A stretch of 46,657 nt of DNA from Macrostomum lignano (GCA_002269645.1 NIVC01004418.1:1-46657), one strand, 5' to 3'. Positions 6,001-9,000 are shown, counted from the first letter of the stretch. The notes: generated by a model not told the origin, from the letters alone. Numbers and translations are program-made.

Positions 6001-9000
6001 GCAATTGCAGCTTCGTGCGCCACCTGATCGCCATAGGCAAGATTTAGAGGAGTGGGGCAGAGATATGTTAGACGAGGCTACCAGGGAGAGGCAGGAGAGG
6101 CTCGCCCAGCTGCGCGCGCAAGCTCTGATGCCTCCTCCTTCCACGCCTGAAGAGCCCCCGGGTTCGGGAAACCCGTGGGAGGGCTGAATGGCCCGGCCCG
6201 AACTCAGCCCCGTTCCCTCTCTAGGGCCCAGCTTAACCTGCCACGTCCGCCCAGCAAGAAGTTTAGATTTGAGAAGGTACCCGATTTCTATCAGCCAAGA
6301 CCAGCTGAGGACAACGCGGGAGAGATATTGTTGTAGAGTTGCCAATTGAGAATGTTCCCACCCGCCTCCTGGTAGATGGGGGCAGTGCGCTGTCTTTGCT
6401 AACAGTCAAAGACTTTACTAAAATTACCGGACAGAGTGTGGAGGCCCTGGAGCCCCCATGTGTGAAGGCCGTGTCCTACACGGGCAATGAATTAGAGATG
6501 CTAGGCCAGGCCACCCTCACAGCAGTTATTGGGCTAGAAGAGGTGAGAATCCTCTTTCTGGTCGTTGGCAATTCAGCAGCAGTTTCCCTCCTGGGTAGTG
6601 CTTTTCTAGCCAGTACGCATGCTATCATAGACTATCGAACAGAAAAGGTTTACTTGCTAGGTGTGAGTCTCCCATTCGACCCCCGCTGAGTAACAGATCG
6701 GTAGCTAGCCAGTGATTGCTTAATTCCCCCCCCCCGATTCGCGTGTCGAAATTTTGCTCGTATTGCCCCGTTGGAGACCGCTTTTCGCGTATTTACGTAT
6801 GCCCTCTATTACTCGAATTTATGTTGTGACCTCGTGCTCGTTGGTGTTGTTTAAATATCTAAGATTTTAGCTCGAAAATTAGGCCCGTACAGTATGCGTT
6901 AATTCCCTATCAGTAAATATTAACTTGGAAACTAGTAAAATTTCTATGGGTCTGCTCCACAGGAGGTCCTGCCCCGCTGTTTAAGATTTTCTGGGAACAA
7001 TGGAAGTCTGGGACCGTAGGAAATTAGCACCTTTAGGTCTGATTTCGTGTGTTTGTTCACACTTTGTGAAAGTCCGATTTTGGGAAACTTTTAATTGGTT
7101 TCGATGAGGCAATAGGGGGGGGCCTTCAATGTAATTAAGTTTATCAGGCAAATGGGGCAGCAATTAGTTTAGAGTAGGCCAGTGGTTTAGTCAATGTAAA
7201 GTCAGGTAAGTAATTAAAGTCAAGTTATGGGGACAGATGGTTCAGAATTAGTAAGTAAGCATTAAGAACCACCAGCATCAGCAGTTGGGAAGCCGCAGAA
7301 ATAGCTCCAAGAGCAGTAGCCAGTGCATTGTGAGACCGGCTATTAGGGCCGTCGACAGCACGACCAAATGCCAGGAGCCGTCGGTCTCCACCACAGGGGT
7401 TGGCAAGGGCTGTGGAGCGGCAGCCACGGGCGTCACCGCGGCTACCGGCGGCGGAGCGTGCGCTCGGGCTGACAACGGCGGTGGTACCGGATGCCAACCG
7501 GCCCCGGACGCTGGTTCGCTGGCGGCCCGGCGGTCGCATGGCCCGGGAACCGCGGCGCCTATGCCACCAGATGGCGCAGCCGGCCCAGAATCAGGGGGGG
7601 CGTCCGGCTCTGAATGGCTGTCTTCGGGCGCTTCGTAGTCGGACTCCTCTTCAAGGATGGGCTCGGCTACTAGCGGCCGGAATCCTGAAAATGAGAATTT
7701 AAAGGATAAGATAGGAGTTAGGAAACTAGCAAATTATTAGGATGTAGATAGATGGGGATTTTAACTTTATGGCGTGTGGTAGTGGCCTTCTTGGGGGTTT
7801 CTTCATTTCTTCATTCCCTCTCCTTCTCTTGAGCTCTAGGTGATCAAGTAGTGGTAGCCTTATTCCCCGCCTTCTTTTAATAATACACCTCAAAGTGGTG
7901 GCAGTTTTTCGTCTTCCTCTCCTCTGGTAGAAGGGCAAATGGTGGCAGTTTCCCCGTGCAATCCACTCTAAGTGGTGACGAGTTCCCTCTTTCTCTTCCC
8001 TGTTAATGTACAAATGGTGGCAGTTTTCCCTAGCAACCTCTCTCAAAATGGTGGCGGATCCTCCTTTTCTTTTCTTTAGTAATGCGCCAAGATGGTGGTA
8101 GGTTCCTCTTTCTCTTTTATAATAGTACATCAAACTGGTGGCAGTCAAATTAATGATTAATTCCTCTTTCAAACTCTTTCGGCTACTAAGTTTATGAGGG
8201 TTTCGGAGACGTGAATGAGGGCTGTGTGTGTGTGTGTGTTTCTGTGTGTGCCACTATTTTTATAGTATTTCACTATTTTTCTAATAAAAACTTGTTTTTC
8301 TAATATGCCACCTTTTATTATAATATACGAGTCTTTGTTGTGCGTCAATCAAATTCATAAAAATAAGTCTGTGTTGGCCTCTCACTCTTAGTACCGTAAG
8401 AAAAGACATATATTATTACTGAAATTGGCTCAGTTTAATATGAAAGGCATGACGAGTGGGTAGATTTCGTTTAACGTACAGGCGAAAGGAAATCAGGTTG
8501 GTGATGGGACTTACCGAGTAGTTGTATAGTTTGGAGAATCGCGCTGAGTGCCTTGGTTGGAAACTGCGACTCCGTGTAGGTTGCAGGCAGCCGGCTCCCG
8601 TCATCAGTGGCGCCTTTTATACAGTGGCCAGCGCACGGCGCGGCGCCTCCCAGCCTACAACCGATCGCCCCGAAGCCCTCTGACTGGCTGAAGCGGGGTC
8701 CGAGCCTTCAAGGACGCTAGGCCTCCGTGCGGTTGAACTCCCGGCCAAATTAGTTTATTAATTTACTGCGCTGCATTAGTATTTTCCCCCCTGTGTAATC
8801 GTCATTCTCCCCGAGGCTCTGCCCTTGGCTGTGTGCTAGCAACCCTTCCCCCCCCTCTTTTTCCCCACTTCCCTCACCCTTCCCCGTTTCCTCTCTTTCC
8901 CAGCTGCGCTTCTATCCAATTATGATAATTTATTGTTGACAATTCGCTATTTTTCTCCCTACTATTGCGCTGTCTGTGTTTCCCCCCTCCCACTTTAGCC

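Follow-up and report, generated by a model that had tools for sequence, protein, structure and literature searches.

A degenerate tandem array in the 3' region of a long terminal repeat (LTR) retrotransposon of Macrostomum lignano was found to be built from the element's own priming site. The element occupies the start of a 46,657-nt stretch of DNA (GCA_002269645.1 NIVC01004418.1:1-46657), which was analysed as a whole and is referred to below as the window. Judged from sequence comparison, the array units were copied from the junction at which the U5 end of the LTR meets the primer-binding site (PBS), not from a tRNA, because the last 7 nt of the LTR are included in them. We tentatively consider the array, with a confidence somewhat short of even, to be a by-product of replication that was seeded from this junction by an aberrant strand transfer and was then duplicated.

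The array units derive from the LTR/PBS junction

As an earlier note on this DNA had proposed, the host of the array is an LTR element. It is 11.3 kb long and has two long direct terminal repeats with 99.1% identity (6 mismatches and 14 gap positions in BLAST) and CTAT on both sides. The PBS begins 3 nt past the 5' LTR and is the exact reverse complement of tRF-3001a, the 18-nt 3' fragment of tRNA-Leu(AAG/TAG) (sequence from PMC10591036). It also matches the first 18 nt of a human Leu(AAG) 3' probe (PMC6103689), in agreement with the proposed complementarity to the 3' end of tRNA-Leu, and CAAAATGGTGGCAG at 2371-2384 is indeed the real LTR/PBS junction. The 18-mer complementary to this PBS is a common mammalian small RNA, known as tRF-3001a or 'miR-1260' from tRNA-Leu (PMC10591036, PMC7328434); according to the literature, the same 18-mer tRNA-derived fragment (tRF) was also sequenced as a small RNA in a snail. 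The 19-nt junction TACATCAAAATGGTGGCAG consists of the last 7 nt of the LTR, an AAA spacer and nucleotides 1 to 9 of the PBS.

The array lies between a protease-like remnant and the 3' LTR, approximately 1.1 kb upstream of the latter, in the non-coding 3' region (Table 1). Its units are designated U1 to U10, and the unit called U5 is always given as unit U5 to distinguish it from the U5 end of the LTR. Seven units are well kept (U3 to U9, 7886-8144) and three are decayed (U1, U2 and U10), the last of which follows U9 directly. The majority call of the units equals TACATCAAAATGGTGGCAG at 18 of the 19 positions. Among the individual units, U9 matches the junction at 18/19 positions, U3 at 16/19 and U7 at 15/19, confirming that the units mimic the LTR/PBS junction. 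PBS nucleotides 11 to 18 are matched by none of the units, and nucleotide 10 is matched for the Leu-UAG type alone.

The nine motifs listed earlier were all recovered at their positions and stand well above chance, although they differ in quality: those at 7777 and 7849 are weak (7/19 and 9/19 to the junction), the one at 7973 has three mismatches and the one at 8049 has one. The exact 9-mer TGGTGGYAG occurs eight times in the window, compared with 0.71 expected, and eight occurrences were reached in 0 of 100 shuffles. All exact matches are on the plus strand, including five in the array (7896, 7940, 8015, 8093 and 8136), one at the PBS (2376) and two in the LTR interiors (2120 and 11193). With two mismatches allowed, the 9-mer was not commoner than in shuffles (139 vs 129). 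For the 15-mer TCAAAATGGTGGCAG with at most three mismatches, 11 matches were obtained against 1.78 expected, and eight of them are in the element (two in the leader and six in the array). Additionally, when both strands of the window were compared with the junction, an identity of 14/19 or more was shown by the junction itself, a leader motif, five array units and just three unrelated 19-mers.

Repeat structure and conservation of the cores

The tandem structure was detected independently by Tandem Repeats Finder (TRF; period 75, 2 copies) and by a repeat finder. From 7849 to 8136, the start-to-start spacings of the cores are 47, 44, 33, 42, 34, 44 and 43 nt, and higher-order periods of approximately 75-78 nt (U4 and unit U5 against U6 and U7) and approximately 120 nt are present. 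The spacers fall into a short class (U4 and U6) and a pyrimidine-rich class ending in TAAT..ACA (U2, unit U5, U7 and U8), with U3 standing alone. The unit duplicates 4/6 and 5/8 named earlier are clear, whereas 2/7 is weaker. This pattern points to several duplications in different registers and to decay at both edges, as would be seen in an ordinary evolving tandem repeat.

The earlier view that the spacers have diverged while the core is retained holds strongly only across non-homologous spacers. In an ungapped register over all units, the pairwise identity was approximately 0.8 in the 12-nt core and approximately 0.3 in the spacers, a comparison that mixes non-homologous spacer classes. A gapped alignment of the pyrimidine-class units plus U3 gave an identity of 0.68 in the core and 0.54 in the spacer. 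In three class-matched unit pairs, 45 of 56 core positions (80%) and 89 of 142 spacer positions (63%) were identical (p = 0.018), with no difference in one of the three pairs, and the excess in the core is thus modest.

A by-product of reverse transcription as the favoured origin

The PBS is a place of strand transfers and strong stops. A patch of approximately 19 nt, covering the U5 end, the AAA spacer and the start of the PBS, would have been copied to the 3' region via an aberrant template switch during reverse transcription. Subsequent duplication of this patch, several times and in different registers, would have produced units of 33-47 nt and the higher-order periods of approximately 75-78 and 120 nt, with decay greatest at the array edges. 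In the sense RNA, pairing of a well-kept core would then be confined to the final 9-10 nt of tRNA-Leu, with a predicted energy roughly half that of the 18-nt PBS, and the array would exert at most a weak auxiliary effect by binding tRNA-Leu or Gag.

Several observations are in line with such a course. In all units, the match to the junction ends after PBS nucleotide 9-10, which fits one patch boundary inherited by every copy. The edge units are decayed, and in class-matched pairs the core is only modestly better kept than the spacer. Moreover, the element contains other degenerate tandem repeats, such as the 53-nt units of its LTRs. LTR retrotransposons commonly have tandem repeats in the interval from pol to the 3' LTR; these repeats have been ascribed to illegitimate recombination or to abnormal strand transfer between co-packaged RNAs, their function being unknown (PMC7004042, PMC11963269). 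We infer, on this basis, that the array originated by strand transfer and has no essential role.

Other findings weigh against an origin as a mere by-product. The core is the best-conserved stretch of the unit, and the seven core substitutions are all transitions. Those that preserve a G:U pair are enriched, being found at 4 of 16 sites at the two permitting positions vs 3 of 56 elsewhere (p = 0.039). The units diverge by 20-40%, compared with just six mismatches in approximately 2.2 kb between the LTRs, and the divergence of the units therefore predates the insertion. By this measure, the array is older than the insertion and has persisted in a replicating lineage with five cores intact. In addition, the leader has a junction-like motif of its own, and 10 nt inside the LTR match the PBS start. 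A 175-codon open frame on the antisense strand of the array is likewise not predicted by a neutral model. The conservation of the cores and their substitution pattern suggest some constraint on the cores, neutrality being judged here from one copy.

Pairing with tRNA-Leu and a possible role in cis

The complementarity of U3, U4, U6 and U9 to the 3' end of tRNA-Leu covers 9 nt (Leu-AAG) or 10 nt (Leu-UAG type), and U7 and U8 form 9 bp with tRNA-Leu, including one G:U pair. The predicted duplexes with the 18-nt tRF have energies of -11.6 to -18.9 kcal/mol for U2 to U9 and -39.4 kcal/mol for the PBS. As read from these predicted pairings, short GC-rich complementarity (8-11 nt) to the primer tRNA is present in the 3' part of the genome. 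Using two 30-nt probe sequences that cover the first 30 and the last 30 nt of tRNA-Leu, with the anticodon and the variable arm outside them, we found no sites of at least 8 nt for other parts of tRNA-Leu in the 3' region beyond chance. The complement of the 5' seed of the tRF was absent from 7700-8200, and its single occurrence in the element is at the PBS.

The array region was predicted to fold worse than its shuffles (z = +3.45), and the G-rich cores were predicted to pair locally with the pyrimidine spacers. Exposure of the cores as single strands was rejected, their predicted accessibility being no greater than that of other G-rich 9-mers. Self-priming was also discarded, as the sense strand contains no complement of the PBS and the exact matches are plus-strand throughout. 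A splice acceptor, composed of a pyrimidine tract and CAG, was rejected by eye, the tract not being located between the branch-like TAAT and the AG. Furthermore, a tRNA bridge of the Ty3/Gypsy type was ruled out, as the units pair with the same tRNA segment as the 5' PBS.

PBSs of 11 nt are functional in Gypsy. On the predicted complementarity, the 3' end of tRNA-Leu may anneal weakly to the cores with the help of a chaperone, and by analogy Gag may recognise the junction sequence at the array. Both would be part of the alternative that survives best, which we consider unlikely but still deserving of weight: the array might be a selected cis platform on the sense RNA, in which seven weak tRNA-Leu annealing sites or Gag-binding junction mimics aid primer recruitment or packaging with particles supplied by a partner. 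The preservation of the core, the over-representation of G:U-compatible substitutions and the age of the array relative to the insertion would all be accommodated by such a platform. The lead-in AA is conserved though unable to pair with the tRNA, which fits recognition of the junction as such, and in mouse mammary tumour virus (MMTV; PMC8096270) the PBS sequence itself is bound by Gag as a determinant of packaging. However, the sites and the 5' PBS are complementary to one and the same segment of the tRNA, and one tRNA therefore cannot bridge the genome ends; no further complementarity to the two probes was seen beyond chance, the cores are not predicted to be exposed, and priming at an internal site would yield a dead-end cDNA. 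A role of the PBS in the dimerisation or packaging of Ty3 is unsupported in vivo (PMC11381356), and the edge units of the array have been allowed to decay.

More generally, the array may be a selected device that multimerises the U5/PBS junction. It would act either as sense RNA that captures tRNA-Leu or Gag and out-competes the autonomous partner for packaging and priming, or through an antisense RNA or a basic protein that gives copy-number control at the PBS junction. Either would amount to a hitherto undescribed use of the primer site. On the sequence at hand, we regard a device of either kind as improbable on the whole.

An antisense open reading frame spans the array

One minus-strand frame is free of stops over 525 nt (7729-8253, 175 codons) and spans the whole array; the earlier note did not mention it. 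The other two minus-strand frames in that stretch contain 15 and 10 stops. None of 2000 dinucleotide-preserving shuffles reached 175 codons, the maximum being 158, and a unit re-phasing model in which in-frame duplicates were discounted gave p values of 0.001-0.016 for the antisense frame. When both strands of the whole internal region were considered, only gag, the protease open reading frame (ORF) and the antisense frame stood out. On the sense strand, the array contains 14-19 stops per frame, and sense coding was rejected.

The AT-rich module at 7680-8480 might accordingly be a minus-strand unit that codes for a small basic protein, or that gives rise to an antisense RNA whose junction-complementary segments damp priming in family members. 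This explanation is rather improbable in our estimate, although the length of the frame and its prominence among the ORFs of the internal region speak for it. The predicted product is very basic (isoelectric point (pI) 10.8) and is the element's sole strongly basic product, compared with an acidic gag product (pI 5.2) without a CCHC zinc knuckle. The array periods of 75, 78 and 120 nt are multiples of three, a TATAAA is present approximately 130 nt upstream of the ATG, and antisense ORFs together with tandem repeats are typical of this region in plant Retand elements (PMC11963269). On the other hand, no homologue or domain of the antisense ORF was found in Pfam, PHROGs or PDB, and AlphaFold gave no confident fold (pLDDT, the predicted local distance difference test score, 34). 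The codon-position composition is flat, and no AATAAA occurs within approximately 1 kb downstream on the minus strand, where the nearest ATTAAA is approximately 630 nt away. Moreover, the array cores are read in three registers by the frame, and therefore the nucleotide conservation is not accounted for by any one peptide motif. When U4 and U6 were compared by hand, codon by codon, synonymous changes were not in excess.

Other explanations

A binding-site array acting at the DNA level, as an enhancer, insulator or silencer for a host or element protein, would have the short conserved core and the variable spacers and spacing that are usual for a site cluster. In some retroelements, each repeat unit is known to contain a factor site (PMC11602158), and a strong insulator is present in the 5' region of Gypsy (PMC1635307). 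The 19-nt match to the element's own junction would not be needed by a host factor site, however, and the substitution pattern fits RNA pairing, which makes this explanation quite doubtful. An array of YY1-type sites was specifically rejected: binding of YY1 is lost upon single changes in its core GCCAT (PMC11602158), and this core is present in 0 of 10 units, where the minus strand reads ACCAT, ACCAC or ACCAG.

The earlier note had suggested a sponge or decoy for 3' fragments of tRNA-Leu (tRF-3) that block the PBS or guide silencing, and this suggestion did not hold up; we consider it very improbable. According to a summary of Schorn et al. 2017 (PMC7515703), PBSs are targeted by 18-nt 3' tRFs, which block reverse transcription, and 22-nt forms act in silencing through RNA interference. 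The PBS-complementary tRF is common in mammals and sequenced in a snail, and seven sites lie within 260 nt. The pairing is nevertheless limited to the last 9-10 nt of the tRF (PBS nucleotides 1-9, or 10 for the Leu-UAG type), and the complement of the 5' seed never occurs in the array. With duplex energies of about half that of the PBS, the units would be poor competitors. Their cores are not predicted to be more accessible than other G-rich 9-mers, and none of the units has extended its complementarity, as would be expected under selection for a decoy.

That a G-rich word merely clustered by chance in sequence of low complexity can practically be set aside: the loose 9-mer is as common in shuffles, but the exact 9-mer, 15-mer and 19-mer counts, the 18/19 match of one unit and the tandem structure found by both programs refute it.

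Anatomy and age of the element

The features of the element are listed in Table 1. The LTR ends form a 10-nt inverted repeat, T(T/G)ATGTAACC...GGTTACATCA, and the internal leader before gag is 2.4 kb long. An exhaustive search of 1.84 billion protein representatives returned just four matches to the gag product, all of them distant. The best one is a flatworm protein (29% identity, E = 1.1e-7); PNMA/Retrotrans_gag domains are present in all four relatives, and a CCHC zinc knuckle in three of the four. Downstream of gag, similarity to an aspartic protease extends below threshold over a stretch of approximately 120 codons. In the long open fragments of the internal region covered by the scan, no Pfam match or similarity to reverse transcriptase, RNase H or integrase was obtained, and the element is therefore non-autonomous. 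To judge from these fragments, pol beyond the protease-like remnant has been deleted, with gag unbroken; the deletion events are countable only against an intact relative. The element is best classed as a young, non-autonomous Ty3/gypsy-like LTR retrotransposon whose gag kinship is distant.

The upstream part of both LTRs contains 53-nt tandem repeats (2.2 copies, approximately 80% matches; 712-846 and 9795-9910), which may represent duplicated promoter or enhancer sequence. The composition of the internal region changes in steps: 7300-7700 has 66-75% GC and no recognisable ORF, 7680-8480 has 35-48% GC, and the sequence is GC-rich again thereafter. The AT-rich module at 7680-8480 contains both the array and the antisense frame, and no terminal repeats or target duplication marking it as an insertion were found.

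Table 1 Features of the element in the window
Feature	Position	Strand	Basis and remarks
Target-site duplication CTAT, 5' copy	166..169		Same 4 nt beyond 3' LTR
5' LTR, 2203 nt	170..2372	+	BLAST between LTRs; ends by reading
tRNA-Leu 3'-end complement inside LTR, 10 nt	2120..2129, again 11193-11202	+	Exact motif search
Junction of U5 end, spacer and PBS start, TACATCAAAATGGTGGCAG, template of array units	2366..2384	+	19-mer comparison
PBS, 18 nt, complement of tRNA-Leu(AAG/TAG) 3' end	2376..2393	+	tRF-3001a comparison
Leader motif resembling junction, 15/19 identity	2456..2474	+	19-mer comparison
gag ORF, 445 codons, 0 stops, 0 frameshifts	4850..6187	+	ORF scan, distant Ty3/gypsy-type relatives
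Protease-like remnant of pol	6309..6689	+	PF13975, E = 0.008, below curated cut-off
Antisense ORF, 134 codons from first ATG	7726..8130	-	ORF scan
Entire array, degenerate, with 10 tandem units of 15-72 nt	7767..8160	+	TRF, repeat finder, unit alignment
Decayed units U1 and U2 (cores 7777, 7849)	7767..7857	+	7/19 and 9/19 to junction
U3 lead-in and core, 16/19, core exact	7886..7904	+	Junction comparison
U4, 13/19, core exact, short 'A' spacer class	7930..7948	+	Junction comparison
Unit U5, 10/19, core with 3 transitions, 'B' spacer class	7963..7981	+	Junction comparison
U6, 14/19, core exact, 'A' class, duplicate of U4	8005..8023	+	Junction comparison
U7, 15/19, one core mismatch A>G, G:U pair with tRNA kept	8039..8057	+	Junction comparison
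U8, 14/19, core C>T, G:U pair kept, duplicate of unit U5	8083..8101	+	Junction comparison
U9, best copy, 18/19 to junction	8126..8144	+	Junction comparison
U10, lead-in kept, 5/9 core positions changed, all transitions	8146..8160	+	Unit alignment
TATAAA, consensus match only, ~130 nt upstream of antisense ATG	8259..8264	-	Motif search
Putative polypurine tract (purine-rich), adjoining 3' LTR	9212..9228	+	Position alone
3' LTR, 2217 nt	9229..11445	+	BLAST between LTRs; ends by reading
Target-site duplication CTAT, 3' copy	11446..11449		Read from sequence

Further primer-like motifs

The 10-nt match to the start of the PBS inside the LTR, TGGTGGCAGC, is located approximately 250 nt before the LTR end, and its duplex with the tRF has a predicted energy of -21.2 kcal/mol. 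Immediately downstream is a perfect hairpin (11-bp stem, 3-nt loop; 2130-2154), motif and hairpin together covering 2120-2154 and 11193-11227. The leader motif at 2456-2474 is found 90 nt downstream of the PBS proper; the 3' half of this motif, GTGGCCGA, agrees with 8 nt of the 5' part of tRNA-Leu in the tRNA sense, a count within chance. Further into the leader, approximately 940 nt past the PBS, a 10-nt match TGGGATTCGA to the complement of the tRNA-Leu T-arm was found at 3313-3322; by our own estimate, approximately 0.2 matches of this type are expected by chance. On the sense strand at 7561-7569, ATGCCACCA equals 8 of the last 9 nt of tRNA-Leu and could pair with the PBS or the array cores, and its frequency is compatible with chance. 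No known RNA families or tRNA genes were found.

Similar motifs occur in a JGI metagenome contig (L001) that encodes a distant gag-pol relative. In this contig, TGGTGGCAGCGA adjoins a 10-bp inverted repeat at 100-157, and two tRNA-Leu-like complements, TGGTGGCAGCGA and then TGGTATGCAGCGGTGAGGATTCGAA, are located within 140-230, 53 nt apart from start to start. The leader of this relative then has three tandem repeats, each of 50-58 nt, at approximately 270-410. From this comparison, multiple primer-like motifs may be a trait of the element's clade.

Surroundings of the element

A 23-nt minisatellite of 51 copies (11478-12648) begins 33 nt past the 3' LTR. Arrays of this sort are very abundant in the window and also include a 17-nt repeat of 39 copies, a 21-nt repeat of 13-15 copies, (GACA)n, a 16-nt repeat of 153 copies, a 30-nt repeat of 50 copies, a 16-nt repeat of 54 copies and (TGTC)n. 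Exons encoding HEAT repeats similar to those of the proteasome activator PSME4 were found on the minus strand at 12783-14588, and two Peptidase_M13_N segments on the plus strand at 35125-41707. By the position of these predicted exons, the element is beside or within a PSME4-like gene.

Search for related copies and significance

A search of an index of 5.8 billion proteins gave no match to gag, a profile search gave three matches, none of them close, and exact look-ups of gag, of the antisense ORF and of a host exon found nothing. A search with an M13-peptidase exon gave no match. In two scans of metagenome contigs and in scans of genome contigs and of viral contigs, DNA patterns of the array and the junction had no matches, and a protein pattern had no confirmed matches in viral contigs. 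The only related DNA, contigs L001 and L002, lacks the 3' region.

Should conservation of the cores be borne out in other copies, the element would be the first retroelement known to multiply its primer-site junction as a cis or antisense signal. This would have a bearing on the competition of non-autonomous elements for primers and particles and on the ways in which elements cope with control by tRNA fragments. If the array is a by-product, it would be a clear footprint of aberrant strand transfer at the PBS that seeded a tandem repeat, and it would lend support to the origin that has been proposed for the repeat-rich 3' regions from which satellites arise.

Comparison with known systems

No repeat built from an element's own U5/PBS junction, no PBS-like internal repeats and no tRF decoys were found in the literature searched. 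The statement that no such array has been described therefore stands for the junction-built repeat, but not for tandem repeats in the 3' region (PMC7004042, PMC11963269) or for second tRNA sites near the 3' end (PMC11381356, PMC1635307). The components are known in kind, namely 3'-region repeats, extra tRNA sites in Ty3 and Gypsy and antisense ORFs, and the junction-built repeat is the new part.

The closest likeness is to the hypervariable 3' repeats of the plant Tat/Ogre and Retand elements (Macas et al. 2009 as cited in PMC7004042; PMC11963269). Those repeats occupy the same place, downstream of the final sense ORF but ahead of the polypurine tract and the 3' LTR, they are short head-to-tail units of varying length and sequence as in the array, and they are likewise accompanied by antisense ORFs and non-autonomous derivatives. 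Unlike the array core, which is a copy of the element's own U5/PBS junction, they are family-specific, with no relation to the PBS reported. Moreover, Tat/Ogre and Retand are plant elements, whereas the element described here resides in an animal, with PSME4-like and M13-peptidase exons nearby, has a distantly related gag and is known from one copy.

The bipartite PBS of Ty3 and the 3' PBS of Gypsy (PMC11381356; PMC1635307) resemble the array in that the 3' part of the genome contains additional complementarity to the primer tRNA, short (8-11 nt) and GC-rich, and Gypsy Gag, like the gag product of our element, has no zinc fingers. In Ty3 and Gypsy, however, there is a single 3' site on a different part of the tRNA (T-arm/D-arm, or anticodon and T stems), and one tRNA can thereby bridge both ends. 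The array instead has 7-10 tandem sites, all on the same 3'-terminal 9-10 nt as the 5' PBS.

In MMTV, the primary sequence of the PBS is readable by Gag (PMC8096270), which would make a multimerised PBS-like sequence a plausible packaging aid. That virus is a retrovirus with a single authentic PBS in a structured 5' leader, and binding was shown by experiment, whereas the array is known from sequence alone. With respect to the control of retroelements by tRFs at the PBS (Schorn et al. 2017, summarised in PMC7515703; PMC10591036, PMC7328434), the PBS of the element is a perfect 18-nt target for tRF-3001a. The array units, in contrast, pair with half of the tRF and have no seed match. Finally, the monomers of mouse L1 Tf (PMC11602158) are, like the array, tandem units that each contain one short conserved motif, in their case for YY1; these monomers are approximately 200 bp long, are located at the 5' end and act as promoters, whereas the array units are without the YY1 core.

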